A stretch of DNA of 64,000 nucleotides from Macrostomum lignano (Eukaryota). Where the stretch lies: assembly GCA_002269645.1 (NCBI GenBank), contig NIVC01001281.1, positions 169,302 to 233,301 on the forward strand, written 5' to 3'. The position numbers and the translations under genes were made by a program. Below are positions 7,764 through 35,200 of the stretch, piece after piece; position 1 is the stretch's first letter; each line of letters starts with the position of its first letter. The notes beneath the pieces are model-generated. The model saw only the letters and a program-made list of their open reading frames with translations, ran no database searches and had not been told where the DNA came from.

Positions 7764-8172
7764 ATGTATGTTTTTCATTAAAGGTATGCACTTTTACATG
7801 CACCTGTGATTGTGTGTGTATGTGTGTAATAGTGATAGCCCATAATTCATGGGTTTTGTACTTTGAGACAGCGTGGCCAAATGAATACAATGCAATTGCA
7901 AGAAGTGATTGCAGAGAAGAAAAAGTCACAAAGGCTTGGAAGGCTGGTGTGCACTTATATTATAGTTAAACTACTAACCTGCATGATTCAGCAAACACCA
8001 AACCCCCCACCCGGCCTAGGCTGGTCTGGGCAGACAGACAAACACCCTAGCCAATCAGAATGCAAGAACACTAACCGGTGTACAAGCTGCATACACAACA
8101 ATGGAGTCTCAATTGTGACAGCCCAGTGCATCCAAATCTTGCATTTCTTCCACCCACTGCATTTCTCTCCAG

Positions 8173-11100
8173 TCAACGCCAAGAAGTCAGGCTGCTCAGC
8201 AGCCGGAAGGCGCCCCAGGCCAGCTGCAGCAGCTGTCCTATCCCTACCTCAATCTGTTCAAGGAGCTGGGCGTTGGCCAATGGAACAGGTCAGAGTGCCA
8301 TGGCGGGGTGGCCTCCTACATGGACCAGACTGTTAAGTCAACTGCCTTCAGCATCCAGGGCGCGGTTTCCGCCTCCAACTACATCCAGCTGCCCAGGCCT
8401 GCTGGCCGCGGCCTGCAGCTGCAGTGCCGCTACCTGTACGTGCAGTTCCGGCCCAGCCCCGGCCGCCACTTCGTGCTGCACGTGGACCTGGCAGCGGCCG
8501 GCACCGCCGCCCCGGTGCGGCTCAGCGTCAGCAGCCTCTACAAGCGGCCTGCCGGCGGCGCCGCTGCCATCAAGCTGCCGTTCGTCTTCGACGCCGACGG
8601 CCGAGGCCGCCTGCTGGCCGCGCCGCCGGACGAGTCCGAGGCGCCGGCGGCCGGGGCGCCCTGCCCGGAGGCGGCCCGCTGGACTCTGCTGCGTCTCGAC
8701 CTGGACTGGGCGCTGCGGGTGTTCGCCGGGGTTCGTCTCGGCTGCCTGCGCGGCCTTCGGCTCTGCGCCTGCATGAGCGCCCGCGCCGTCTTTGCCGCCT
8801 CCAGGCGCTACCAGCCGGGCGCATCGCCCGGCTCCGAGGAGGCGCTGCCCCGCGCCATGGCCTTCTTCCTGGGCCGCGGCGAGCGCTTTGAAGATCGCTA
8901 CGATTTTGTGCAGCTGCCCGAGCCCACAGTCGAAGCTCGCGAGGCCGCGTCTCCTGTCGGGCCGGCTGAGCGAAGACCCTCGCCGCCGCCTGCGCCGCTG
9001 ACGCCGCCGCCGCCTCAACAGCCGCAGTCGTCCTTCGTCAGGCCGGCTGCTTCTGTGCCGGCGTCAGCAGCGGCGGAGCTGCGCCTGTCGCGGGTGCTGG
9101 GCTGCACACAGCCGCACAGCGCCTGCTGGACCCAGGAGGAGCTGGTCTTCCCCTGCCACGCCCTGGTGGTGGCCCAGTGCCTGGCCACCGGCCGCCAGCG
9201 CTTCTTCACCGGCCACACGGACTCCGTTGGCTGCGTGGCCGTGGACTCCGCCTGCGGCCGGATGGCCAGCGGCCAGCGCGGCCTGCTCCGCCTGTGGGAC
9301 TTCGCCGGCCAGCGCTGCCTGGCCCACTGTCCGGCCTTTCAGCTGGGCGCCGGCCTTCTGGCCTTCTCGCCCGGCGGCCTTCGGTTGGCTGGCACCGGCC
9401 GGGACGCTCACGGACGCTTTGTGGTCACCGTCTGGCAGGTGAGCCGGGGCTGGCGTGCTGGGATTTGAATCAAGATAGGATGGGATTTGAGTCATGATTG
9501 GATGGGATTTGGGCCTGGGATGTGGAATCTGGTGGATAATTTTCCCCACATCCGCGATCCCCAGACGGACGGGCCGGTCGTCCGGTTGCTCGCCAAGGCC
9601 TGCAGCGACCAGGCCCCCGTTGCCCTGCACTTCCTGGACGAGGCGCGCGTAGTCACCTGCGGCCGCGGCGCCGTTCGCTTCTGGCGCGTCAAAGGCGGCG
9701 GCGGCGCCGCCGGAACCTCGGCGCTGCTCCGCTCGGCGCCGGCTGCCCTGGGCGAGTACGCGGCGCTGGACTTCACCGCCGTCTGCCCGCTGCCCGGGCC
9801 TGCCGACGCTGACCCGCTGGTGCTGGCCTGCGCCCGGTCCGGCCACGTGCTCGAGCTCGGCGCCTCCGACCTGGCCGTCCGGCGCGCCCGCCGCCTGCTG
9901 CCGTCGGACCGGACAGCCTGGCGTGGCCGAGCTCGGCCGGCCGGCATCGAGGTGTCCGCGGTGGCGGCCAACGAGTCCTTCTGCGTGACGGGCTCGGCCG
10001 ATGGCTTCCTGCGCGTCTGGCCGCTCGACTTCTCGCAGGTGGGTCTTCGACTCGAGGTCCCTCACTTGAAGCTCGCTTTATCTCTGTGTTTGACCCTGGG
10101 ACTAATTTGTGCGGGCTGATTTGGAAATGAACTGGTGCACCGCCTCTTGCAGGGAAGTCTAGTTATAATGTATTGAAATTTCCTCTTATCTTGAAATTGA
10201 CCAAAAATACCTTGACCAAAATTACACCTGACTGAATTACACTTGACTGTAGCTGACCAAATCATACCTGACCAAATTACACCTGACCAAATTACACCTG
10301 ACCAAATTACACCTGACCAAATTACACCTGACCAAATTACACCTGACCAAATTACACCTGACCAAATTACACCTGACCAATTTACACCTGACCAAATTAT
10401 AACCTGACCAAATTACACCTGACCAAATTACACCTGACTAAATTACACCTGACCAAATTATAACCTGACCAAATTACACCTGACCAAATTACACCTGACC
10501 AAATTACACCTGACCAAATTACACCTGACCAAATTACACCTGACCAAATTACACCTGACCAAATTACACCTGACCAAATTACACCTGACTAAATTACACC
10601 TGACCAATTTACACCTGACCAAAAAGCACCTGACCAATTTACACCTGACCAAAAAGCACCTGACCAAATTACACCTGACCAAATAGCACCTGACCAAATT
10701 ACACCTGACCAAATAGCACCTGACCAAATTACACCTGACCGAATTAAACCTGACCGATATTACCCCAAACCTTACCTTATGAAATTCCCCGCTCGCCCAG
10801 GTGCTCCTCGAGGCCGAGCACGAGAGCCCAGTGGTGACCGCCGCTCTCAGTCGGGACGGCGCCAGCGCCCTGGCCGCCACCGCCGCCGGCTGCCTCGGAG
10901 TCCTGGACGTTGCCCGCCGCGCCTACCGGACACTCGTCCGCTCGCCCGGCCCCGGCCCGGTTGCCTCCGCCCACCTCGGCCGGGACACCCTGGCCACGGT
11001 GTCCGCCGGCGACAAGTCGCTCCGCCTGTGGAGCTCCGACCGCCTCGACCAGTGCCAGAGCTTCGGCCTCGCTGAGCCGCCCTGCCGCGTCGCTGTTCAC

Positions 11101-14100
11101 CCCCGCGACGGCCTCGCCGCTTGCGGCTTCCGCTCCGGCCACGTCCGCTTGTTCGACCTGGCCGCCGCTTCCATGCTGGGTGAGCGGCGCAGCCATAGCG
11201 GCGCCGTCAGCGGGCTCGCCTTCTCCGCCTGCGGCCTCCGCCTGTTCTCCTGCGGCTCCGACGGCGGCCTGTCGGTTCACGACGCCTCGGCGGCCTGCGC
11301 GCTGCTCCGCTCCGTGCCCGACGTTGTCGCCAGGGTCGGCGCCGGCGGCTCCGAGGACCGTCCGAGCCCGCTGGCCGTGGACTCGGCCGACCCCGGCGGC
11401 TCCCTCATTGCCTACATCGGGCCGACCGGCGCCGCGGTTGTCGTGGCCGAAGGCGCCACCCTCGCTGAGCTGATCCGCGTAGACGTCACCATGGTCGCCG
11501 GGGCGGGCGTGGCGGACGCAGCCCGCGCCCTGCAGTTCGGCGCCGGGCACCTCCTGGTGGCCACGGAGGGCGGCCGCCTACTTCGATTGGAGCGCCGTTC
11601 CGGCCGCCTGGCCTCCCAGCTGTCCGGCCTCGGCCGCTGCGACTGCCTCTGCCTGAGCCCGGACGGCCGTTACTGCGTGGCCGGGGTTGGCCGGCAGCTG
11701 AAGCTGTTCCAGAACTGCTCGACCGGACAGGTGCAGTTCTCCAGCTTCCTGGGCCACAGCGGCCGAATTTGCGCGCTCGCCTTTAGCGCCGACGGCGCCA
11801 GACTGATGTCCGTTGGGGAGGCGGTCCTCGTCTGGGACTTCATGGCCCCGCCGGCATCTGAGAAGCCTGCCGAGAACCTCAGGACTGAGAACGGCGCCAA
11901 GGTTTGTGGACAGTGAAACCAGCCCCGCCTGACTCCCAATGCACATCAGCCTCCCCACCTCACTCCCAATGTACATCAGCCTCCCCACCTCACTCCCAAT
12001 GTACATCAGCCTCCCCACCTCACTCCCAATACACATTAGCCTCCCCACCTCACTCCCAATACACATCAGCCTCCCCACCTCACTCCCAATGTACATCAGC
12101 CTCCCCACCTCACTCTCAATGTACATCAGCCTCCCCATCAACTCTTTTAGAAGTTTTTCATTTAATCCTTGCAGAAGCCTCAACCAACACCCGTCACGCC
12201 GGCCGCTCCGCAGTCGCGACACCGAGTGGAGGCGCCGGTGCGCGACCCCGGCCCGGGCCCGGTCACCGGGACGGCGAACCCGGAGCTCGCCGATGCCGTG
12301 CCGCTTGCGAACGACGGCAGCAGATCCAGCTCCAGTGTGTCCGACTGCGAAGTCACGGAGCTCGCCGCGCCGGCCTGCAGCGCCCCGCCTGCCGAGCCGA
12401 CGGTGTCGCTGCCGGTGCCGCCGCTGGTGCTGTTGCCCGACGAGCCGGCGGCGGGAGACGACGGCGGCGCTCCGCACGAGCATCCGGCGCCTTCATCTGC
12501 GCGCCACTTTCGGTCCGGCGCCGAGTCGTTGCGACAGGCGCCTGCCGACCAGCGGCGCTACCTGGCGCGGCCCGGCGAGGAGGCGCTGCGGCTGCGCGCC
12601 GGACTCGGTGCCGGCTCGGGCGTCGGCGCCATCGCCTGGCTGGAGGGCCTCGGCCGTCTGGTGTACGCCGTCGGCTGCCAGCTGCTGTCCGAGGACCTCG
12701 AGACCGGCCTGCAGGCGCGGCTCTGCCAGCTGCCCGGCCCGGCCACCGCGGCCGCCGCCAGCTCCGACAGCCGCCTGGCCGCCTTTTGCTGCCTCGGCGG
12801 CGGTCTGCGCATTTTCGACGCCGAGGCTGCCGACGCTGCGAACGCCGAGGCGCCGGAGGGAGTGTCGATGGCGCTGATCTGCCGCTCGCTGTCCGGCGGC
12901 CCGGCCACCTGCGCGCAGTTCAGCAGAGACGATCGCTACCTGCTGACCGTGGGCAACCACGCCGATCCCCTGCTGCAGGTCTGGCTGGGTCCCGACTGGC
13001 AGGCCGTGGCCAGCCACCGGGCGGCCTACCCCGTCAACGACGTCTGCTGGCGCGCCGCCGACCTCGCCAGTTTCGTCAGCGTCGGCACCGCGGCCGCCCT
13101 CTCCGTCTGGTCGGTGGTTGGCGGGCCGGACGGATCGCAGCGGCTGCAGCTGGAGGAGCTGCCCGCGCCGGACGAGGCCATCGGACGGCGGCCCGGACTG
13201 CGGGCGTCGGCTGCCTCAGCCGAGGAGCTGTCGGCTTGCACCGTCGACTCTGACGACGCCGCGTTTGTGGCCGGTGGCCGCGGCCGGGTCTCCGTGTGGT
13301 CGCTGGGCGAGCGCCGCTGCGTCATGCACTGGGAGGCCGAGGCCAACGAGGTGTGTCGGCTGGCCCTGCGGCCCGGCGGCCTCCTCCTGTGCGGAGCCGC
13401 TGACGGCGCCGTCAAGGCGTGGGACGTGCGCGACATCCTTGGCCTGGGCGGCGGCGGCTGGTCGGGCGGCCGCGTCCGGCTGGTCAGCTCCGCCCGACTG
13501 GATGGCGCCGTGCTGGCGCTGCTGCCGGACAGCCAAGCCGAGCTGGCGCTGGCCGCCACCGCTGCTTCCGTGTGGTGCCTCCGAGTTGCCGAGGGCGCCG
13601 CCACCCGCCTGATCGCCGGCCACGCCGCCCGCGTCGCCGCCGCGGCGCCGTTGCCCGGCCTCGGCGTCCTGGCCACCGGCGACGCGTCGGGCGCTGTCCG
13701 AATCTTCGACTCGGCCGGACGGCAGCTCCTGTGCCAGCTGCAGCCCGGCCGCCTCTCGGCCGCCTGCCTCTGCCTGGCCGCGGACGCCCTCTACTTGGCG
13801 GCCGGCTACGGGGACGGCCACGTCCGGGCCTTCACGGCCGGCGCCGACCTCGGCCAGACTTTGAAGGCCCGCCCGCACGCGGCCGGCGTGTCCTCGCTGG
13901 CTTTGGACCCCGGCCACCGTTTCCTGGTCAGCGGCTGCTCCGACGGCCTGCTGGCGCTGACGGGTCTCGACACCGGCCTCGTGCTGCGCGTCCTCCGCGA
14001 CCACCGCGGCTCCGGCGTCGCCTGCCTGGACATCCAGCCGGACTCCGGCGGCTGCCACTTCCTGGCCTCCGCGGCCGACCGCCGCCTCAGCCTCTGGGCC

Positions 14101-14570
14101 TGCGCCGACTCCGCCGACTCCGTCGACCTCCGCCTGTGGCTGGCCTTCCCCTGCCGGCCTTCGCCCCAGGCAGCGGCCGCCCGCTGTCTGACGATCCGAC
14201 GGCCGCCATGGAGCTGCCGCCGGCGCTGGCCCGCTTCTGCCCGGCCGACGCCGACCTGCTGCTGCTGACCGGCTGCGCCCAGCAACCGGCCGTGGACCTC
14301 TACAGCCTCGCCCAGCGCCGAGTCGTCCGCTCCGTGTCGCTGCCCCGCTGGCCGCACTGCCTGGACGCGTCTCCGTCCGGCCGCCTGCTGCTGCTGGGGT
14401 CGCTCGGCCGCCTTGTCACCCTGCTGGACCTCGGCAGCGGCTGCTTCCAGGACTTCGTTGGACACGCGGAAGGCCTGTCCTGTGTCCGGTTCGGCGAAGA
14501 TGGACGGTCCTGCTGGACTGCGGCTGGGAGAGACGTTCTGGGCTGGGATGTGCTGATCAGGGACCGCTGA
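8173..14570 (+). CDS. WDR90: WD repeat-containing protein 90 (CFAP20-like N-terminal domain plus WD40 repeats); start not resolved; one frameshift
   Basis: YPYLNLF...GAVSASNYIQLP...RYLYVQFRP matches the WDR90 N-terminus; VWPLDFSQ|VLLEAEHE and C-terminal LPPALARFCP...QDFVGH are conserved. Exons about 8173-9438, 9565-10038, 10801-11901, 12175-14570; the three introns are GT-AG and frame-preserving. Frame change near 14150. Confidence 0.9.
10255..10755. repeat. 15-bp minisatellite in WDR90 intron
   Basis: (ACACCTGACCAAATT)n. Confidence 0.95.
11915..12140. repeat. 30-bp minisatellite in WDR90 intron
   Basis: (GTACATCAGCCTCCCCACCTCACTCCCAAT)n, about 7 copies. Confidence 0.95.
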
Positions 14571-16669: not shown

Positions 16670-18701
16670 ATGGAGACGGAATCTTCAAGCGCAGGTAAGG
16701 AGCAGGAGAGAGAAAAGCCTCCGTCCTTACCGCGATGGGGGGGGGGCTGCCACGAACTGTGCAAATTGATTTGCCTGTCCAGGTGAGCTCGGGGACGGGC
16801 GGGGGAAGAGCTGAATAGGGGAGGGGATGAAGTTCGGAGGCTGCGATGAAGCTTAAATCGAAGCTGCAACTCTGCTCGGCCCGACAGCAGCCGGAGACGG
16901 CAGCCCTGAGCTGGCGATGCAGACGGCCGATGGCACCCGGCTGGGGCAGCTGATGCAGCTGCCGTGCATGCAGAAGTACCTGGCCAGCTTCCAGCCCGAC
17001 GCTGTCGCCGAGATTCAGCGGCACATCGAAAATCGTCTCAAGCGGTCGACGCCTACGACGACAGCCGCACCGTCGCCGCAGCAGCCGCCGTTCCGTCTGC
17101 CGACCTACGCCGAGTACGTCCGCATGGTGCAGTCACAGCAGGACCTGCGCCCCCAAGTTCGCGTTGTTGACAGTGAGAGCCGGCAGCTGCGGCACAACCA
17201 CAGCGACACCGGCGGCTGCCAGCTGAGCGGCCAGCGCCTTCGGCTAAACGACGACGAGCGACTGCAGACGGTGTCGGAGCTACTCGCTTCCGAAGAGCGG
17301 TTCAGCAGCGACCTCCGCCTGCTGCACACCGAGTTCCGAAGGCCGCTGCTGGCCAGCCGCCTCCTCAGCGCCGAGGACGTTGCGGACGTCTTCGTCAACC
17401 TGCCGCAGTTGCTGCGGGCCCAGGCCTCCCTGCTGGACCGCCTGCGACAGGCCGTCTCTGCAGCCGTCTCCGCCGGAGATGCCGACCAGGCCGCTGCCGG
17501 CGTTGCCGATGCCTTCATGGACGGCGCTACCGACCACCTCACCTGCCTGCGGCACTACAGCGTCGGGCACCGGCGCTCGCTGGCCCGCCTTGACCGCCTG
17601 GAGCGGCGCTGCCGCCTGCTGCGCCTCTTCCTGGCGGCCTCCCAAGACGACAACCCGCGCCTGCGCCGGATGCCTCTGCGCGCCTTCCTCATCCAGCCCG
17701 TGCAGCGGCTCATGCGGTACCCCCTGCTGCTCGACCGCCTGCTGCGGCTCAGCAGCTGCGGCGGTGGCGGCGGAAAGCTCGACTTTGCCAGCTCGACGGT
17801 CGAGCGGCTGCGCCGGGCGAAGTCGCGAGTCGAGGCCGCCATTGCCGAGACCAACGCCCGCGCCCTTGAGCCGTCCGACGCGCAACCCCAGCAGCCGCCG
17901 CAGCCGCAGGCGCCGTCGCCCCCTCCGCGGCAGCTGCCCACCTCTGCCTCTTCGAACTCGCTCTCGGCCATCGGCTGTCTGCGCCACTTCGCCGGCCCAA
18001 CGAGGAAGGCGACGCCGCTGACAACAGCCGCCGCTGCGGTCGAATGGGCGGCTGCCAGCCGGCAGCGCAGCGCCTCCTGCAGCGGCGCCGACCTGGTACG
18101 CCTCGCGCTTGACCGCCTGCGCTGGGGCACCGCAGCCCGCTGTTGCTTCAGCGGCGCGGTCTACGTGGCCCCGACCGCCACGGCCGACCTTCGCAGCGGC
18201 TGCTGGGCGGTGCTGATCTCTCGAAATCTGCCAGAGGACGCCGGGGCTGCCGAGTCTGGCGCGGAGAAGCTTTCAGCGCTGCTGTTTCCTGGAACTCTGG
18301 ACCGCGAAGCCGCAGCGGTCGCAGCTGAAGTGGGCGACGATGAGCCGGAGGCGGCGCTGCTGCTGTTCCAGGAGCCGCGGCTCGGCAGGCGGGCGCTGCT
18401 GCGGGAGCCGCTGCTGCTCAGCGCCTGCGTTGTCGGCGAAAGCAGCGACGACTTCAGCGTCCGCGTCTCGGACGTCCGCGGCGGCAGCGGCGTCGCCCGC
18501 CTGCGGCCCGCGGTTGACTCGCCAGCGGCTGCCCTGCGTCTCCAGCGACTTCTGCGCCGTGTCAGCCTGCGCTGTGGCCGCTGGCGCCTGCGGAGGCCGG
18601 CGGCATCCAACGCCCTCCTGGCTGGACTGGTCGGCGGCTTTAGCCCCCCACCCTCGTCTGTGGCGTCCGGACACTCCTGGCTGGAAGAAGCGGAGCATTG
18701 A
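16670..18701 (+). CDS. Rho guanine nucleotide exchange factor (DH domain, probable PH-like region)
   Basis: TVSELLASEERFSSDL...VFVNLPQL...LRAFLIQPVQRLMRYPLLLDRLL is a Dbl-homology signature. Proposed small first exon 16670-16694 (ATG...GCAG|GTAAGG) splices in frame to 16888. Confidence 0.85.
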
Positions 18702-18705
18702 TTGT

Positions 18706-19329
18706 CTGGGATCTTGGATCAAGGATCTGGGATCAAGGATCTGGGATCAAGGATCTGGGATCAAGGATCTGGGATCAAGGATCTGGGATCAAGGATCTGG
18801 GATCAAGGATCTGGGATCAAGGATCTGGGATCAAGGATCTGGGATCAAGGATCTGGGATCAAGGATCTGGGATCAAGGATCTGGGATCAAGGATCTGGGA
18901 TCAAGGATCTGGGATCAAGGATCTGGGATCAAGGATCTGGGATCAAGGATCTGGGATCAAGGATCTGGGATCAAGGATCTGGGATCAAGGATCTGGGATC
19001 AAGGATCTGGGATCAAGGATCTGGGATCAAGGATCTGGGATCAAGGATCTGGGATCAAGGATCTGGGATCAAGGATCTGGGATCAAGGATCTGGGATCAA
19101 GGATCTGGGATCAAGGATCTGGGATCAAGGATCTGGGATCAAGGATCTGGGATCAAGGATCTGGGATCAAGGATCTGGGATCAAGGATCTGGGATCAAGG
19201 ATCTGGGATCAAGGATCTGGGATCAAGGATCTGGGATCAAGGATCTGGGATCAAGGATCTGGGATCAAGGATCTGGGATCAAGGATCTGGGATCAAGGAT
19301 CTGGGATCAAGGATCTGGGATCAAGGATC
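18706..19329. repeat. 14-bp minisatellite, about 44 near-identical copies
   Basis: (GGGATCAAGGATCT)n beginning just after the RhoGEF stop codon. Confidence 0.97.
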
Positions 19330-19627
19330 TTAATACTATGCATAATTTACTTCTTGAACAACTCGCTTTGCGTGACACGAACGCCACTTTTATTGCAAAA
19401 CTCATAGTAGTATTAGCGTTTTTTTCAGTTACTGAAATAAACATTTACAAATGATGCTTAAATATAATATAACCTTATCATGCACTGTAGACTATGCAGT
19501 GTACATAAATATGTGCAAATTTTAATCGCCACCTTCAGTACGAGGTGCTGCCCTTCAAGACGCTGCCTGGCGCAACAAGCAACAAAATAAACAGCAATAG
19601 TGCTGAGTAGACGAGTAGCTATTTGAG

Positions 19628-20437
19628 ATGACTAAACTGTTAGCCTATGTTATTAAGAGTGCTGTCCTTAAATTACACAATGGCAGCATTCGATACTTGA
19701 GTAATTGTCATGACCAGGCATTATTAGGGTATTGCGCTCGTGTTTCCACAAAAATCGGAAAAGGGGTCAACTTAACTCAAAAATCTTCCAACATAAATGG
19801 CACAAATGCCACACAAGCTGACACAAATGCAACGCAAGCTGACACAAATGCAACACAAGCTGACACAAATGCAGCACAAGCTGACACAAATGCCACGCAA
19901 GCTGACACAAATTCCACGCAAGCTGACACAAATGCCGCACAAGCTGACACAAATGTGACACAAGCTGACACAAATGCAACACAAGCTGACACAAATGTCA
20001 CGCAAGCTGACACAAATGCCACACAAGCTGACACAAATGCCACGCAAGCTGACACAAATGCCACACAAACTGACACAGATGTGACACAAGCTGACACAAA
20101 TGTCACGCAAGCTGACACAAATGCCACGCAAGCTGACACAAATGCCACACAAGCTGACACAAATGCAACACAAGCTGACACAAATGCCACGCAAGCTGAC
20201 ACAAATGCCACGCAAGCTGACACAAATGCCGCACAAGCTGACACAAATGTGACACAAGCTGACACAAATGCAACACAAGCTGACACAAATGTGACACAAG
20301 CTGACACAAATGCCACACAAGCTGACACAAATGCCACGCAAGCTGACACAAATGCCACACAAACTGACACAAATGTGACACAAGCTGACACAAATGTCAC
20401 GCAAGCTGACACAAATGCCACGCAAGCTGACACGTAA
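19628..20437 (+). CDS. Candidate mucin-like protein built from a 21-bp (ADTNATQ)n repeat
   Basis: Open frame across about 30 units with no indels; frequent synonymous variation (GCC/GCA, ACA/ACG, GTG/GTC); N-x-T sequon in most units. Could still be a non-coding satellite; the repeat 19800-20433 itself is certain. Confidence 0.4.
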   Translation: MTKLLAYVIKSAVLKLHNGSIRYLSNCHDQALLGYCARVSTKIGKGVNLTQKSSNINGTNATQADTNATQADTNATQADTNAAQADTNATQADTNSTQADTNAAQADTNVTQADTNATQADTNVTQADTNATQADTNATQADTNATQTDTDVTQADTNVTQADTNATQADTNATQADTNATQADTNATQADTNATQADTNAAQADTNVTQADTNATQADTNVTQADTNATQADTNATQADTNATQTDTNVTQADTNVTQADTNATQADT

Positions 20438-20770: not shown

Positions 20771-21086
20771 ATGAAACTCGGATTATCGAAAAACTTCAGC
20801 CTTTGGCTGCTGGTCTTTGCGCTCCTGCTGAACTGTGAGTGCTGCAACGTCTGCTCAGTTTTTATCGATTTTTGCTTATCAATCTCACTGTGAGGGATGT
20901 CAATCTCAACCATCTCACTCCGCAGGCACCGGCAGGGTGTACAGCTGCCAGTGGAGCGTCTCCGGCTGCGCCAGTCGCCACCGCAGCTGCCAGTACGCCT
21001 GGGAGTGCTGCCCGGACCTCGACTGCCGGCCCTACGTTGACCCGGTGGACGAATTCCAGTTTCCCGATGTCCTGGTCTGCCAGTGA
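20771..21086 (+). CDS. Secreted knottin (ICK) peptide A, 74 aa, 2 exons
   Basis: Exons 20771-20834 and 20926-21086 (GTGAGT...CCGCAG, phase 1). Product MKLGLSKNFSLWLLVFALLLNCTGRVYSCQWSVSGCASRHRSCQYAWECCPDLDCRPYVDPVDEFQFPDVLVCQ: hydrophobic signal peptide, C-x6-C-x5-CC-x4-C-x17-C. AATAAA at 21166. Confidence 0.85.
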
Positions 21087-21263
21087 GCCGCGTGCGGGCT
21101 TTGACCTTCTCTGTTCTCACCTGTTTTGTGCAGCTGTGTCTGACATTTAGTAAGACGGAGTGTTAAATAAACTGATTTAAGTCGTTTTAATTTGTCTTTC
21201 TATGTGACCAACAGTTGATAATGAATGGCAAAACTTTAGTTAAACAGCAGAGTTCGCAGCAGG

Positions 21264-21553
21264 TCATTCGCAAATGTTGGTGTAGACGCCGCTTCCGTAC
21301 ACGTGCTCCGGGACGGGGATTCGCTGGCAGGTGAAGCTGCAGCAGTGCCGGTCCTCCCGGCAGGGGCCGCCTTTCGGATTGCAGGGCAGCTCAGCGCCGC
21401 AGGTGGTGCAACCAGCTGCAAATTTGTTGCAGTTCTGAATGAGGGGCTGAACTTCAACTGCAATGACGCCCTATGCGATAACTTTGCCGTTGGGCGCCTC
21501 AACTCACCGACAAGAGCCAGCAGGACAAGCAGATGAAGAACACAATGTCTCAT
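21264..21553 (-). CDS. Secreted knottin (ICK) peptide B, 79 aa, 2 exons
   Basis: Exons 21553-21508 and 21457-21264, 50-nt GTGAGT...TTGCAG phase-1 intron. Product MRHCVLHLLVLLALVVEVQPLIQNCNKFAAGCTTCGAELPCNPKGGPCREDRHCCSFTCQRIPVPEHVYGSGVYTNICE: signal peptide, C-x6-C-x5-CC-x3-C-x18-C. Confidence 0.85.
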
Positions 21554-21818: not shown

Positions 21819-22032
21819 GGGGTTGTAGCCTAGTGGTCAGAGCGTCGGACTCACGACTGAAATGCTGGGGGGGTTCGATTCTCGACCCACTCAGAACAGT
21901 TTGTGTCCTTGGCAAGAAACTTAACTCTCCATTGGCTTCAGTTCACCCAGCTGTAAAATGGGTGCCAGGATTAGCTGGGGTAATTGAGACTGTGTGCCGA
22001 CCCCCCCCCCCCCAGTCCTTGGACTGAACAGC
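21819..22032 (+). mobile_element. tRNA-derived CORE-type SINE, intact copy
   Basis: A-box TAGCCTAGTGG, B-box GGTTCGATTC, CORE-like TGTGTCCTTGGCAAGAAACTTAAC...CAGCTGTAAAATGGG, tail C-run plus AGTCCTTGGACTGAACAGC. Confidence 0.8.
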
Positions 22033-23283
22033 CGTACGCAGTCTTCAGATGCGCCGCTGAGCAGCAACAAAGGACGCGAACCTGAAAAGTTAATTCAGGC
22101 GGTCAGGGTGCATTAGATGGCGCGCTTCAGGGCGACAGAGTCCACCAGCGGTGCCGAGCGCACAGCAGGCAGTCCGCCTACATGAACCAACAAGTAGCTC
22201 TCGGCCCGGATCAATGACTAAGAAGGTCACACTACACAGCTGGCCCACATCATACAGCTGGATCTAATGGAGTTGCAAGAGGTCACTATCGTGGGTACGT
22301 CTCCATTCAGAGGATCCTGGGACCGGGTGAAGGTGTCTGGTCAAACCGCACCTTCGGCAGAACATGCACTACTTGTCGCTGTCCCCGCGCCTGTTGCGGC
22401 TCGACCTGCACCTGCTTGCCCCGCTGCATCCGGCTGTTCTGCGCGAACTCGGCCGCAGGTTCTCACCCAGAAGAAGCACGAGCGTTTAAATACCTGCGCT
22501 TTTGTCCGACCCAATACTACAGCAGACTGGCTGAAAAGTAGTCAGACAAAAAATGACAGCTACCAAATATCTCTCTAATGTAGTTCCTTATTAATCTGGC
22601 TGTTCTCCGTCCGGAGATCTCGGTTGTGGCCCCATCTGCTGTAATACTGAATGTACTAAAGTACAGCTCGTAGTCAATAAACTTGTAAATTGCCCGCAAC
22701 CAGAGCACAGGGAGAGATCCGACAAAACTGTCATGTAAAAACCTTGCTAACACTTTGTCTCAAGTGAAGTAACAGGTGCGAGTAAGTAGCTGTAGCCACT
22801 TTACTCATAAAAAGTTTCTTAAGGCAAGGGCAGTCCGCGCTTAAAATCCATGCATTCAGTTTATGTTTTCCTATTCTCTGCGTTCAACTGTTACAAACGC
22901 GATGCCCTAGCAACCCAGTTCGCTAAGCAGGGGAGACTCGCTGCAACTGCGTACCGATGATCGGGTCAGCCCCTTCACCAGCAGACTTCTCGTTTTCTCT
23001 GTCCCGCATCTCTCTCCCTCTGAGCTCTGAAGGACCCGCAGATCCTGGATAAAAAACTCCCAATCACAATCCCAGCTATACAGTTGTTGTTGTCGACTAG
23101 CTGCCCCCCAGTGAGCTAATCCATGATTGATAATCCCGGCCGCCTCCCAGTTGCCAATGCCAACGGAGCTGCTCCGGGAGGGGGTCGCATAAGGAGCGGC
23201 TCACGGGCTGGTGCGCGCGCCCGCAATCTGGGGCAGCTGAGAGGCAGGGAGAGACGGCACTGCGCACGGAACTCAGCTTGTCA

Positions 23284-25425: not shown

Positions 25426-28400
25426 TCAGAGCTCCCCCTGGCAGGCCGCAGCCGCCGCGCCGCCCAGCACCTGCTCCCTCGGCAAGTCGGCATTGCGCAG
25501 CAGGTGGTAGTAAAAGTTGATGGCCTTTTCGAACACCGTCACGCCGATGCGCTCGTCCACGCCGTGGTAGCGGTTGGCGTCCCGCATGTGGATGTGGTTC
25601 GGGGTGAACCTGTACACGTTGCGCGTGAACTGCAGGTAGTGGTTGGTGTCAGTCTTGGCCACAAAGATGCCCGGTAGGACGCGACCGTCCGTGAACACCT
25701 GCTGAGCTGTGCCGGCCACCACCTGGAAGAGTTGCGGATGGACCAGTGACGGACTAAAGGAACCTTGCGAGCTCTTAGATTTTACCTTGATGCAAGCAAT
25801 CTACTCTACCTGAAAGGCGTAGCTGGATTCCTCGCAGTCGGCCACCGGGGAGGCCTCGATGCCGTCCAAGATCTCAATCTGGATCCGGGGATCGGCGATG
25901 ACCTGGCGGTCGTGGTCAACCACCTGCTGAATGGTCTGTGACGGGTGGATGCGATGGTTGACCACCGCCTGGGCGCTGCTGGCCAGCACGTTGTGCTTGA
26001 TGCCCGCGTTGAACATGGTGACGGCCGTGGTCGTCCGGATCAGCGCATTGGTCGGTGGATTTCGGCTGAGTGCACTTGAAATTTGCACAGCGGATAGGCG
26101 TTAAAGTCACGTGACTTTTCATGCTTCCATTGGTCTATTAAAGTAGAATCAATACACTGGTCGAGCTTGACTTACTAGCTGACTAGAGGCTTGAACAGCC
26201 ACAGATTGTTGAGCACAACTCTGGCCGCGATGTTGGCCTGAAGTTGGCATCAAACAGTTTTGCATTACAATTAGGAACTTTGGGCGATGCAGTAAATCAA
26301 GGCGGCTGCCGACCCGCAGCCAGAGGGCAGGCAAGCGCATTCCGCTGATCCTGAGCTCGCACACGCACGAGTACATGCAAGTGCGCAGGCACTCTGGGCT
26401 TCAATGAGCCAGAATCAGGCTAATTTGCGTGCACGAGCTCAAAACTCGGAATCGAACCCCGGGTCACTCGCGCGTTGACCGCTGAGCTGCTGTGCTTCTG
26501 AAACTACTATTAGTAATATTCATAGCCTCCTATGACTCACCGGGAACGGCAGCTTCAGGTAAGTTGACAGGAGCTCCAGGATCGCCTTCTCCGGTCCGTT
26601 GCCCAGCTGAGACGGCTGCTGACTGGCTTCGAGCCGCGCCACCGCCCTGGCCAGGACGCCGATGACGCTCTCGGCCGGCGGCATGGACGAGTGGCCGGGC
26701 GTTGAGTTGTAGCTCAGGCGCAGGTTTACGTAGCCCTTCTCGGACACGCCGATTCTGCAATGCATTTGCGGTTGGCAGTCGGATCCGAGTTTGTCCAGGA
26801 GTTGCAGACCGATTTCAAGGCGGTAGGCAACTGCGGCAACGCCAAAATGCGGCAACGCTCACATAATCGCAGGAGCGCTGAGGCCGGACACGAAGCCGTC
26901 CAGCACCACCATGCCTTCGTCGGACACGAACTCGAGCTTCTGAACCTTCTCCACGGTGCGCAGGTGCTCGGCGATGCGAGCTGCGCCCTGAAAGCCGTGA
27001 ATCTGCAGCGGCGGATGTTTTATTGCTGAGATTTTTCATAGCCTTAGAGAGGTCGGGGCGCAGATCCCCGCCCCCACCGGACTCATGATTGCATGCCTGC
27101 TAGAAGTAGAATTCATGACAATATAGCTTCTTGGAAATGTTTGAGGGCAAAACCAAAACATCAGGATGTCATTTCTAGCTCGTAAGTCTTGTTTTAATTG
27201 GGTTGGTCACAAAAGTTTATGCTCGAAGTTTCCAGAAATCGAAGTGCATCTATCGAATTTTTGTTAGCATTGCGTCTCCTGCTCACCTCCTCGTCGTGGC
27301 CAAACGCGATATAAAACGTCCTCTTCGGCTTCCAGTCCTTGGCGAGCAGGTACTCCATCGCCTCCAGGATGCCCTGCGAGAATTGCAGCCAGCGAGAGTT
27401 GGTGAAAGCCTTTCGGAGAAATGAGAGTAGCTGGAATGACTCACGAAAACTCCGACTTTGTCGTCAATGGTGCCGCGCGCGTAGATGTAGCCGTCCTCCA
27501 CCACGGCGTCGAAATGCGGCTTGGTCCAGTTCTGACCGTCTGAGGAAAAACGCAGGTTGCACACAAAATTCTGGATATTCTCGAGAAAATTACGGGAATT
27601 GGTCGAATACGCAATAAATTTTCTCTAGAATGGATTAGTCTGGAATTCCCCTCGTGAACCGACATCTCAGCAATTCCCCCCATGAACCCTGGAGTCTCAG
27701 CAATTCCCCCCATGAACCCTGGAGTCTCAACAATTCCCCCCATGAACCCTGGAGTCTCAACAATCCCCCCATGAACCCTGGAGTCTCAGCAATTCCCCCC
27801 CATGAACTTGTAATGTCAGCAATTCCCCCGATGAACCCTGGAGTCTCAGCAATTCCCCCCATGAACCCTGGAGTCTCAGCAATTCCCCCCATGAACCCTG
27901 GAGTCTCAACAATTCCCCCCATGAACCCTGGAGTCTCAACAATCCCCCCATGAACCCTGGAGTCTCAGCAATTCCCCCCATGAACCCTGGAGTCTCAGCA
28001 ATTCCCCCCATGAACCCTGGAGTCTCAACAATTCCCCCGATGAACCCTGGAGTCTCAACAATTCCCCCCCCCCATGAACCCTGGAGTCTCAGCAATTCCC
28101 CCCATGAACCCTGGAGTCTCAGCAATTCCCCCCATGAACCTGTAATCTCAGCAATTCCCCCGATGAACCCTGGAGTCTCAGCAATTCCCCCCCCATGAAC
28201 CCTGGAGTCTCAGCAATTCCCCCCATGAACTCTGGAGTCTCAGCAATTCCCCCATGAACTCTGGAGTCTCAGCAATTCCCCCATGAACCTGTAATCTCAG
28301 CAATTCCCCCCTTGAACCCTGGAGTCTCAACAATTCCCCCCATGAACCCTGGAGTCTCAACAATCCCCCCATTAACCCTGGAGTCTCAGCAATTCCCCCC

Positions 28401-29238
28401 ATGAACCCTGGAGTCTCAGCAATTCCCCCATGAACCTGTAATCTCAGCAATTCCCCGATGAACCCTGGAGTCTCAGCAATTCCCCCCCCATGAACCCTGG
28501 AGTCTCAGCAATTCCCCCCATGAACTCTGGAGTCTCAGCAATTCCCCCCATGAACTCTGGAGTCTCAGCAATTCCCCCATGAACCTGTAATCTCAGCAAT
28601 TCCCCCCTTGAACCCTGGAGTCTCAACAATTCCCCCCATGAACCCTGGAGTCTCAACAATCCCCCCATTAACCCTGGAGTCTCAGCAATTCCCCCCATGA
28701 ACCCTGGAATCCCAGAAATTCCCCCATGAACCCTGGAGTCTCAACAATTCCCCCCATGAACCCTGGAGTCTCAACAATTCCCCATAAGGCTTGGCATCTC
28801 AGCAAGTGCATATCTGTATCTAAGAGTAAGAGCGGTCTCACCAGTCGGCACAACATCCAGGTGAGACATGAGCAGCGCTGGCAGCAGGCTGGAGTCCGAG
28901 CCCTGCACCTTGTACAGCAGGCTGTACTGGTTGATCACAGTGAGCTTCACAGACGACTTGGCCGAGTGCACCCGGGGGAAGCTGCTCCGGATGAAGCTGA
29001 CCATCTCGGCCAGCTGCTGGGTGTCCTGCCTGCCGATGTCGTAGGACACCGTGCGGAACCGGAGGCCCCGCTGGAAGCGGGCCAGGCGCTCCTCAGTCAG
29101 CTGGATGAAGTCTTCATCAGACTTGGCGCAGGGCCGCAGTGTGAGGCGGATGCTGCGCGAGTTGAGCGAGTTGAGCAGCAGCAGGCAGCTGAGCAGCCCG
29201 GCCAAGCAGGCGATCGTGACGAGAGCGGTGCGGGCCAT
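25426..29238 (-). CDS. PM20D1: M20 peptidase, N-fatty-acyl-amino acid synthase/hydrolase
   Basis: N-terminal hydrophobic anchor; LLMSHLDVVP, YIYARGTIDDK, AFGHDEE, EKGY...PGHSSMP, NALIRTTTA, AKTD, HGVDERI motifs over about 8 GT-AG exons (first 29238-28842, last 25722-25426). Confidence 0.9.
27655..28780. repeat. About 31-bp minisatellite in PM20D1 intron 1
   Basis: (CCATGAACCCTGGAGTCTCAGCAATTCCCCC)n with variable C-run length. Confidence 0.95.
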
Positions 29239-32276: not shown

Positions 32277-35200
32277 ATGCAGCGGGCCGCTGCTTCTCCC
32301 GAAGAGGCGGCGGGTCTGCGGGACCAGCAGCTGCTGCTCACCAAGCAGCTGAGAGACCGGCAATCGGAGATCAACCAGCTGAAGAAGTCGCTGAGAAAAA
32401 CTCGAGACAAGGGTAAGTTTGCTGGATTTCTGCCCCTGCTTGCTGCTCAGCCTGTGAACTCGCGCAACTCGGAGCTTCCGTTTCAGTTGAGCACGCGGAG
32501 TCCATCGCTGCCGCCAGCGCCCAGCTCAAGGATCGAATCAAGGAGCTCGAGTGAGTCCCTGTTTGTGCGATGTTGTTGTTGATGTAGCTGGCATGATAAA
32601 CATGATTAGTCACTGCAGCTGGCATGATAAACATGATTAGTCACTGCAGCTGGCATGATAAACATGATTAGTCACTGTAGCTGGCATGATAAACATGATT
32701 AGTTACTGCAGCTGGCATGATAAACATGATTAGTTACTGCTGCTTGCCCTGCTCAGGTGATGGGGCTGTCCAGACAGAGGCAATAATATTGAATGTAACG
32801 AATGAGGCCCGCTTAGCTGGATCTGCAATTAATTAGGGGTCTCAGACCTCTCAGTACTTTGACTGGCCCGCTTCAAGAAATTTTCTTCCTCAGACTCCCC
32901 GCTGAGTTGCTAGGGCGGGCAGAAACCCGGAAGTTTTCTCCCCTCACTTCAACTCAGTTTTACCAGGCCTTGCATTTGAGTTCTCCAGCCTCAAGAGATG
33001 GGGCTGACAAAGGCGCTTCCTGAGAGCTGAGGGCTTAAAATGACGTCCTGGCTTTGAATTGCAGGCTTCAGGTGCGCGAGGGAGCGGCAGAGGGCGGCAG
33101 ACTGCAAGCTGAGCTGCTCAGAACCAGCGACCACCTGCAGGTACCGTTGCTATGCTGGGCCTGGTAGAGCCGTTCGTGCACCTGGAGTGGCGCCGAGTCA
33201 AAGAACTTGTCGAACCATTGCAGCGCGCCAAGGACACCATAGCGGACCTGCGCGGCCAGAATGAGAACCTGAAGGAGCAGGTCAGAGTGGAGGTCGAGCG
33301 GCGGGCGAAGCTCGAGGCCGAGCTGCAGGACTGCGAGAAGGCGTGCAACGAGAACCGGGCCCTCCGCGAGGAGCTCGCCGAGCTCCGCCGGGCTGCCGAC
33401 GACGCTGACCGGCTGGTGCGGTCGAGTCGGCGCCTGCAGCGACAGCAGGCGGATCAGCTGCTGGCGGTGAAGGCTGAGAATGCTCGGCTGCTCAAGGCGA
33501 ATGAGGCGATCGCCTCTCTGGAGGAGGAGGTGGAGGCGCTGCGGACTCTCGTCTGCGACAAGGACGCAGCCATGCAGCGTCAGGTCAGAACCATGGAGGC
33601 GCTCAAGGAGCTCATCCAGCGGCTGCGCCAGGTCCATCCCGGGGTGAACGAAAGCATCGACGAGTTTTTCCGGGCGTCGACAAGCGAGGAGGACGACTGG
33701 GTGGAGGAGGACGAGGACTTTGAGCGCAGGCGACTGCTCTACTCGCGGCCGAAAAGCGGCGCCGTTCGAATGGCAAGCCGAAGCTCGCCGACTCGGCAGC
33801 CAAGGGTGCGTTGACTACTGGGCTAATTGTTGCTCCTGGGTGGTTGACTGCTGGGCTAATTGTTGCTCCTGGGTGGTTGACTGCTGGGCTAATTGTTGCT
33901 CCTGGGTGGTTGACTGCTGGGCTAATTGTTGCTCCTGGGTGGTTGACTGCTGGGCTAATTGTTGCTCCTGGGTGGTTGACTGCTGGGCTAATTGTTGATC
34001 CTGGGTGGTTGACTGCTGGGCTAATTGTTGCTCCTGGGTGGTTTCTGTTGCAAAATTAAGACGACAATTAACTCGCCAGTAGCTCCGCCCTGGTTCGTTG
34101 GCTCTGACTTGATCGTCCTTGGGTTGTGCATCTCGAGGTCCCAATTTCCACACGGACTCCCACAAAAATTTGGCATCGAACAAAGGGGCTCGAGAGTCGT
34201 ATCGATCATGTTTCTTTGATTAGACCAGAATTTTCCTGCTCCTCAAAGTTCCTGCCAACCTCCCATCCCGGATCCCGATGCCCAGAGCGTGTCGGTGACG
34301 TCAAACCGCAGCGCGGATTGGGACCGCCAGCCCAGCCAGGCTGCGTCGCGAGCCTCCGCCAGGGCCGAGACGGCCGTCAGGGCTGGCAGCTGCGAGCCGG
34401 CGAGGTCGGCCTCGTCGCTGGCGGGTCCGCCGGCCACAGCGTTGGGCAAGAAGCGACTGGACGCGGTGGCCTCGCTGTACGTGCAGCTTGGCAGCCGGGT
34501 GACTGTGGAGGTCCATGGTGAGCTCAGCTTAGGCTGCTCTAGATGTCTTGAATTTCTAATCGGTTGCTTTTGTGGCATTTTCCACCGGCAAATGCAGTTG
34601 CAAGGATTTAAAATCTGAATTTTAAGGTTTTAATGCAAATAACACGTTGTCAACACAAGACCATTGTAGCACATACATAACAGGAGGTAAAACTCAAAAA
34701 GATTGTGTAATTTTGGAGGCCAAATTCTTGGATTATATAGTTGTGCAGTCAAATGCTCATTTGCATGCTGCTTTCTTCTATTTTATGAGCCCAAAGTTGT
34801 AACTGCTCACAAGTGGCATTTCCTGAACTTTTTGCTTCGTTTTTTTCTGTGGCCTCCGAAAAAATTACGCACGATCTTTGAGCTTTACGTCCGGTTATCC
34901 TACAGTGGTCCTTGAATCAACAGACCCGTTGAACCATGGTGGGAGTTAGAAATTTTCCGGGAGGCATGGTGCATTTTGGCACCCGACTGACCTGTTTTAG
35001 GCAAAACTGAGACTGGCACTGTGAAGTACGTGGGTCTGGCGCACCCGGCCGAGAGGGACAAGGTGTTCGTGGGGATCCGCTTGCAGTCCCAGGCTGGCAA
35101 CTCCGACGGCACCTTCAGGGGAGTCAGGTACTTCACCGCGCCCAGCAAAACGGGCCTGTTCGTCCGCGCTCACAAGATACTGAGCATCTTCAACTCCAGG

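Follow-up and report, generated by a model that had tools for sequence, protein, structure and literature searches.

Two convergent genes for candidate knottin-like secreted peptides in the flatworm Macrostomum lignano

INTRODUCTION

What is encoded by two small, cysteine-rich genes that lie tail to tail in the genome of the free-living flatworm Macrostomum lignano? We addressed this question in a stretch of 64,000 nucleotides (nt) from contig NIVC01001281.1 of assembly GCA_002269645.1 (positions 169,302 to 233,301, forward strand), the whole of which we refer to as the window and in which the two genes, here called gene A and gene B, occupy positions 20771 to 21553. An original prediction, made from the DNA letters and their open reading frames, had described them as a hidden convergent pair of secreted knottin genes and as a candidate toxin, defense, or two-chain system. 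Knottins are defined by disulfides that connect cysteines I-IV, II-V, and III-VI, the third of which passes through the ring that the first two close. On balance, we lean toward reading the locus as two independent, transcribed, Macrostomum-restricted genes for monomeric, disulfide-stabilized, knottin-like secreted peptides.

RESULTS

Gene structures and deposited models

The contig of assembly GCA_002269645.1 (Mlig_3_7) was 100% identical to positions 11264-31553 of the window (20,290 bases), and both genes are already public on it in GenBank as hypothetical proteins, gene A as BOX15_Mlig024450g2 (protein PAA69893.1) and gene B as BOX15_Mlig014727g2 (protein PAA69894.1). The pair is therefore not hidden, as had been claimed. 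The Mlig_3_7 annotation used transcript evidence only, namely, a de novo transcriptome together with StringTie and TACO, with open reading frames called via TransDecoder (PMC5730564). Since its models were built from transcripts alone, genes A and B are transcribed, and the deposited splice junction of gene B is derived from RNA. The protein search clusters that contain the two genes had only M. lignano members, BOX15_Mlig024450 g1 to g3 and BOX15_Mlig014727 g1 to g3, i.e., three homeologous copies of each gene.

Consistent with the original prediction, both the sequence and the deposited models showed two convergent two-exon genes with a signal-like exon 1, a phase-1 intron beginning with GTGAGT, and a cysteine-rich exon 2. 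Gene A (20771-21086, plus strand) starts with an ATG at 20771 and encodes a product of 74 amino acids (aa) ending in ...LVCQ*. Its exon 1 (20771..20834) encodes MKLGLSKNFSLWLLVFALLLN and the first base of the C22 codon, with a hydrophobic, signal-peptide-like N terminus whose top Kyte-Doolittle 9-residue window (WLLVFALLL) scored 2.99. The intron (20835..20925; 91 nt, phase 1, GTGAGT...CCGCAG) has its donor at 20835, and exon 2 (20926..21086) encodes (C)TGRVYSCQWSVSGCASRHRSCQYAWECCPDLDCRPYVDPVDEFQFPDVLVCQ and ends in a TGA stop. Together they make up the GenBank coding sequence span of 316 nt (64+91+161), and the spliced product was identical to PAA69893.1, so the predicted model of gene A was exact.

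Gene B (21553-21264, minus strand) runs from an ATG at 21553 to a stop codon at 21266-21264, and its product ends in ...NICE*. Exon 1 (21508..21553) encodes MRHCVLHLLVLLALV and the first base of the next codon, again with a hydrophobic, signal-peptide-like N terminus (top 9-residue window LLVLLALVA, 3.44). In the deposited model, it is followed by an intron of 92 nt (21416..21507; phase 1, GTGAGT...TTTGCAG) and by exon 2 (21264..21415), which encodes (A)GCTTCGAELPCNPKGGPCREDRHCCSFTCQRIPVPEHVYGSGVYTNICE and then the TGA stop, giving a span of 290 nt (46+92+152).

The original prediction had the start, exon 1, donor, phase, and stop of gene B right, but it placed the start of exon 2 42 nt away from that of the deposited model. 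It took the first AG as the acceptor, so that exon 2 began at 21457 after an intron of 50 nt, the product had 79 aa, and the disputed 42 nt (21416-21457, minus strand) were read as coding for VEVQPLIQNCNKFA. The deposited model uses an AG 42 nt further downstream, with exon 2 beginning at 21415, and yields 65 aa in all three copies. An alignment of the three copies at the DNA level placed a 1-nt insertion in the g3 copy after window position 21422, i.e., within the disputed 42 nt. With the 50-nt intron, this insertion would shift the frame of the entire cysteine-rich domain of g3, whereas in the deposited model it is intronic, and the g3 gene, at 291 nt as opposed to 290 nt, encodes the same 65-aa product. 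We thus rejected the 50-nt intron and the 79-aa product on the grounds of the transcript-derived 92-nt intron and the frameshifting g3 insertion, although a minor isoform with the 50-nt intron may exist in g1 and g2. The open frame across the disputed segment is uninformative, for 14 random codons are free of stops about half the time by our own arithmetic. The distal AG is preceded, at a distance of about 25 nt, by a CTCAT motif resembling a branch point, and no yUnAy motif was seen upstream of the proximal AG; both were judged by eye and serve as heuristics only. We conclude that the 'CNKFA' of CNKFAAGC in gene B is intronic and that the N-terminal C-x5-G-C motif, which the two proteins had been said to share, is largely an artifact.

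The two stop codons are 177 nt apart. The putative poly(A) signals were present as claimed: AATAAA at 21166..21171 on the plus strand, 80 nt past the stop codon of gene A, and ATTAAA at 21186..21191 on the minus strand, about 73 nt past that of gene B. If used, they would make the 3′ ends of the two genes overlap slightly. The gene B hexamer is kept in all three copies, and that of gene A reads AAAAAA in the g3 copy.

Cysteine framework

With the deposited model of gene B, the cysteines of the two proteins correspond 8:8 (C22, C29, C36, C43, C49, C50, C55, and C73 in A; C18, C21, C27, C34, C40, C41, C45, and C64 in B), with loops (A/B) of 6/2, 6/5, 6/6, 5/5, 0/0, 4/3, and 17/18 residues. The last six form the predicted core, C-x6-C-x5-CC-x3/4-C-x17/18-C, as C36-x6-C43-x5-C49C50-x4-C55-x17-C73 in A and C27-x6-C34-x5-C40C41-x3-C45-x18-C64 in B, and each protein terminates one residue past its last cysteine, as had been predicted. 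Both genes therefore have the six-cysteine order C-C-CC-C-C of the inhibitor cystine knot (ICK, or knottin) with compatible loop lengths. In both, the phase-1 intron falls just before or within the codon of the first cysteine.

This framework is not due to chance. A regular expression for it (C-x3-8-C-x3-8-CC-x2-6-C-x3-22-C), applied to all six frames of the window, gave eight matches, which were the two genes, four overlapping copies in one tandem repeat, and two isolated matches lacking gene features. In composition-shuffled windows, the mean was 0.11 matches and the maximum was 1. The cysteines encoded after exon 1 are unchanged in all three homeologous copies of both genes, and residues that differ among the copies are found elsewhere (G4E, S6R, S10R, F16C, E64K, and V70I in A; T20A, P29R, and V54M in B). 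The copies are 97-98% identical, with 3 to 5 substitutions per exon, which precludes a formal test of selection by the ratio of nonsynonymous to synonymous substitution rates (dN/dS).

A tandem repeat with a unit of 33 nt (33831-33995, plus strand) translates into CSWVVDCWANC units that mimic a cysteine framework; it exemplifies the repeat-derived false positives of cysteine-pattern scans in the M. lignano genome. A match at 22601-22693 on the plus strand (CSPSGDLGCGPICCNTECTKVQLVVNKLVNC), 1.1 kb from gene B, has no start codon, leader, or annotated gene and was set aside as a probable chance match.

The number of cysteines in the mature chains depends on the signal peptidase site. Both N termini are strongly hydrophobic and have candidate cleavage sites by the −3/−1 pattern. 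Eight cysteines of protein A come after exon 1, beginning with C22, whose codon is split by the intron; a cut after A17 would leave eight, and one at the canonical position after C22 or G24 would leave seven. In B, the mature chain would keep eight, seven, or six cysteines with cleavage after G17, C18, or A23, respectively. The odd counts of the original prediction (seven in A and nine in B) are thus upheld in part: A would have seven if cleaved at or after C22 and eight otherwise, but B has at most eight. The isoelectric points (pI) of the mature peptides are about 4.6 for A and 6.1 for B, i.e., acidic to near-neutral.

Sequence and structure searches

At the sequence level, genes A and B are apparently orphans, restricted to M. 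lignano among the databases searched. In a word-indexed search of 5.8 billion sequences, A and B each matched only their own three-member cluster. An exhaustive phmmer search with B against 1.84 billion representative proteins retrieved its own cluster and two further proteins, P0007 and P0008, which proved to be spurious repeat proteins and not relatives. The statement of the original prediction that the family was not recognizable held up in this respect, as no described family matched by sequence in Pfam, the PDB, the phmmer search, or the 5.8-billion-sequence index.

When the PDB was searched by phmmer with the full-length and the mature sequence of B, the cysteine-rich matches were all ICK peptides or one nodule cysteine-rich peptide: NCR13, the latter (expectation value [E] of 0.14), U3-SYTX-Sth1a (E of 0.21), atracotoxin-HvI (E of 0.76), and omega-conotoxin MVIIC (E of 2.6 to 2.9), none of them significant. 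The top match, decaprenyl diphosphate synthase, was discarded as a proline-rich chance alignment. Full-length A gave only a nonsignificant match to a low-density lipoprotein receptor repeat in the PDB (E of 0.85), and its mature region gave none.

Structure models were predicted with AlphaFold2 from an input alignment that consisted of the three near-identical copies. In the model of B, the cysteine core had a predicted local distance difference test (pLDDT) score of 65-76, and a C-terminal beta-hairpin was formed (45-49 and 60-64). A Foldseek search of the PDB with this model gave two matches, both of them spider ICK toxins: 2h1z, a 39-residue toxin (target-normalized template modeling [TM] score of 0.72, root mean square deviation of 2.1 over 43 columns, probability of 0.47, and a nonsignificant E of 2.5), and 2mf3 (E of 4.3). 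The model of B is consistent with a knottin-like fold, but it gives no evidence for the knot as such. In the structure check proposed with the original prediction, B thus had a spider ICK toxin as its best, nonsignificant match, A had no match, and pLDDT was low for both.

Several observations weigh against the knottin-like interpretation. Pfam-A returned no family, including WAP (PF00095), for A or for the 79-aa model of B at E values up to 10, and for the 65-aa model, at E values up to 1, it returned only DUF4576 (E of 0.093, below the cutoff of that family) and no WAP domain. Every sequence and fold match in the PDB was statistically nonsignificant, with E values of 0.2 or higher for the ICK peptides, and the Foldseek search of the PDB with A gave no match at E values up to 10. 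The mean pLDDT was 53.7 for A and 62.4 for B, a low confidence that extends to the connectivity of a knot, and the last loop, at 17 to 18 residues, is long for an ICK peptide. A cationic antimicrobial peptide acting on membranes is unlikely, given the acidic to near-neutral pI. With regard to expression and localization, neither Mlig014727 nor Mlig024450 was found in the searchable full texts or text supplements of M. lignano papers. M. lignano is not known to be venomous.

Alternative interpretations

The alternative that holds up best, although we consider it unlikely, is that A and B are secreted cysteine-rich peptides of a non-ICK fold, in which the same spacing goes with another disulfide pairing; they would then be fast-evolving gland products of Macrostomum, e.g., of the seminal fluid, adhesive organs, or epidermis, without toxin-like activity. 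The failure to find relatives beyond M. lignano for B among the 1.84 billion representatives, or for either protein outside its own cluster in the 5.8-billion-sequence index, fits this view, as do the low-confidence models and the acidic pI. It also fits that M. lignano has many other small secreted proteins without known relatives whose expression is limited to the prostate (PMC5977470). However, the sole resemblances in fold and sequence, weak as they are, are all to ICK peptides, and A and B were absent, by gene and by sequence, from the text supplements of that prostate screen.

We find it doubtful that the two proteins are WAP-type four-disulfide-core domains, i.e., secreted protease inhibitors or antimicrobials with C1-C6, C2-C7, C3-C5, and C4-C8 pairing. 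'WAP domain-containing protein' is the automatic UniRef name of all three copies of B, and the corrected models resemble WAP domains in being small, secreted domains with eight cysteines and a central C-x5-CC-x3/4-C (C-x5-CC-x3-C in its WAP form). The WAP spacing is C3-x5-C4-x5-C5C6-x3-5-C7-x3-4-C8, from which A and B depart with six residues instead of five between C3 and C4 and with 17 to 18 instead of three to four in the final loop. In addition, PF00095 matched neither A nor either model of B at the thresholds given above, and neither the sequence searches nor the fold search of the PDB yielded a WAP chain such as elafin or SLPI. The WAP label of B in UniProt is therefore doubtful and probably stems from some other profile.

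The two-chain idea of the original prediction holds that each chain has one unpaired cysteine and that the co-expressed neighbors form a disulfide-linked A-B heterodimer, or else homodimers. We regard it as improbable. The two genes do remain neighbors in convergent orientation at each of the three homeologous loci, and the mature chains would have seven cysteines each if A was cut after C22 or G24 and B after C18. Yet conservation among homeologs that are 97-98% identical says little on selection for a linkage, and the count of nine in B came from an acceptor that is contradicted by the deposited models and the g3 frameshift. The correspondence of 8:8 cysteines weakens the argument from odd counts, because it allows four intramolecular disulfides per chain; with B at eight, the rationale loses half its basis, and what is left for A hinges on the cleavage site. 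The most elaborate version, a flatworm-specific convergent cassette with overlapping 3′ ends and a free cysteine in each product, giving a covalent heterodimeric 'double-knottin' as a two-chain toxin or defense molecule, would, if true, have no described counterpart in Platyhelminthes, but we think it very improbable.

Finally, that the two are fortuitous reading frames in transcribed noncoding DNA from which no peptide is made can be given very little credence: the products are very short and without homologs, the copies are too alike for dN/dS, and neither cluster contains a transcriptome-derived protein from another source, but two neighbors each begin with a start codon and a hydrophobic leader, are interrupted in phase by a GT-AG intron, and have in common a rare framework, expected at 0.11 per shuffled window, that stops one residue short of the stop codon, and all cysteines are retained in the three copies while other residues vary.

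Relationship between gene A and gene B

The original prediction regarded the two genes as diverged paralogs that arose by an inverted duplication. A shared origin is plausible and is best argued by architecture, namely, the 8:8 cysteines, the phase and length of the introns, and the matching C-terminal ends. Sequence comparison did not support homology or an inverted duplication: hhalign aligned A and B over 16 columns only, with a probability of 0.9%; the phmmer search with B did not retrieve A from the 1.84 billion representatives; and MAFFT misplaced the cysteines when aligning the two. An inverted-repeat search across the pair found only arms of 12 to 18 nt, as expected by chance, and hence no surviving inverted DNA repeat. 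A tblastn search of the window with A and B revealed no additional paralog, the matches being translations of minisatellites or of GC-rich, low-complexity DNA.

Genomic neighborhood

The pair is flanked by a WDR90-like gene, which ends near 14268, and, on the minus strand, by an M20 peptidase gene (about 25426-29238), with about 11 kb of intergenic DNA separating the two. All three homeologous loci have the adjacent, convergent pair and the same order of flanking genes. Three copies of the whole 20-kb neighborhood with the M20 peptidase gene, the pair, and the WDR90-like gene, about 95-98% identical, lie on contigs that we denote L001, L002, and L003, the last being the locus on NIVC01001281.1. 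The M. lignano genome has been described as recently duplicated and as having additional copies of chromosomes, with which the triplicated neighborhood is consistent.

Several other features were noted in the window. Gene A is closely preceded by two minisatellites, one at 19000-19330 (23.6 perfect copies of a 14-nt unit) and the other at 19801-20433 (about 30 copies of a 21-nt unit with 90% match), the latter of which yields, on either strand, long artifactual open reading frames made of TQADTNA repeats. A tRNA-like stretch at 21820-21900 (plus strand), which is upstream of gene B by about 270 nt from its start, has motifs resembling an A box and a B box (GTAGCCTAGTGG ... GGTTCGATTC). It occurs once in the window and may be the head of a tRNA-derived short interspersed element or a decayed tRNA gene, judging from these motifs; ARAGORN and Rfam called nothing in the window, including this stretch. 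An intact open reading frame of 594 aa at 16917-18701 (plus strand) encodes a RhoGEF domain (PF00621; E of 2.7e-24). It is not among the genes called on the matching stretch of the GenBank contig and could be a gene that the annotation missed or that was filtered out as a repeat. Positions 8001-14000, which overlap the WDR90-like gene region, are very GC-rich (60-73% GC versus 32-57% in most of the remainder) and contain many long spurious open reading frames on both strands.

DISCUSSION

If A and B are knottin-like secreted peptides, for which we infer secretion, the site of cleavage, the pairing of cysteines, the monomeric state, a shared ancestor, and the function, they would be made as pre-peptides of 74 aa (A) and 65 aa (B), each directed into the secretory pathway by the signal peptide predicted from exon 1. 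The peptide encoded by exon 2, of about 48 to 57 residues, would then fold around its last six cysteines, which have ICK spacing, and the up to two further cysteines at the N terminus could form a fourth disulfide. Released as a monomer from a gland or an epithelium, it might act extracellularly by binding a target protein, and the candidate roles include a defensive or mucus secretion and a reproductive or other gland secretion.

Among known systems, the closest likeness is of B to spider toxins of the omega-hexatoxin-Hv1a type (atracotoxin-HvI, 1axh; the 'dual-target spider toxin' 2h1z), which have the same spacing, C-x6-C-x5-CC-x3-C-xn-C, and one acidic residue past the last cysteine. B also resembles spider ICK toxins in its predicted C-terminal beta-hairpin; 2h1z was its best Foldseek match, and 1axh was the weak phmmer match at an E value of 0.76, neither of them significant. 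The last loop of Hv1a has about 13 residues versus 17 to 18 in A and B. Unlike the spider toxins, A and B have up to two additional N-terminal cysteines, no evident propeptide, and an intron at the boundary between signal and mature peptide, and their source is a nonvenomous flatworm.

The O superfamily of conotoxins, represented by omega-conotoxin MVIIC (1cnn/8x91), has the C-C-CC-C-C order (framework VI/VII) in common with A and B but differs in having a long propeptide and a far shorter last loop. Conotoxin superfamilies are defined by conserved signal sequences, to which A and B showed no similarity. No mollusk protein was found among the matches of A and B in the 5.8-billion-sequence index or among those of B in the phmmer search of 1.84 billion representatives, and the pre-pro-mature organization of conotoxins is not seen in A or B, which have no propeptide between the leader and the first cysteine.

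The nemertides of nemerteans are, like A and B, small secreted peptides of a spiralian worm with an ICK framework, the knot of A and B being predicted only. They occur in toxic epidermal mucus and have demonstrated activity on sodium channels. They differ from A and B in that no sequence similarity between them was detected. A literature search on ICK peptides of nemerteans found only nemertean toxin papers that mention ICK, and one on knottins in flatworms found no paper describing them.

The finding calls for no correction of the public annotation; the deposited models appear better than those of the original prediction. The immediate value of the finding is modest, as the genes are already public and the pair is represented by just three near-identical copies. 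If the fold is confirmed, however, knottin-type peptides would be placed in a free-living flatworm that doubles as a transgenic laboratory model, which would add one more lineage with an independent or very ancient origin of the cystine-knot scaffold and would provide a tractable animal for asking what knottins do outside venom.

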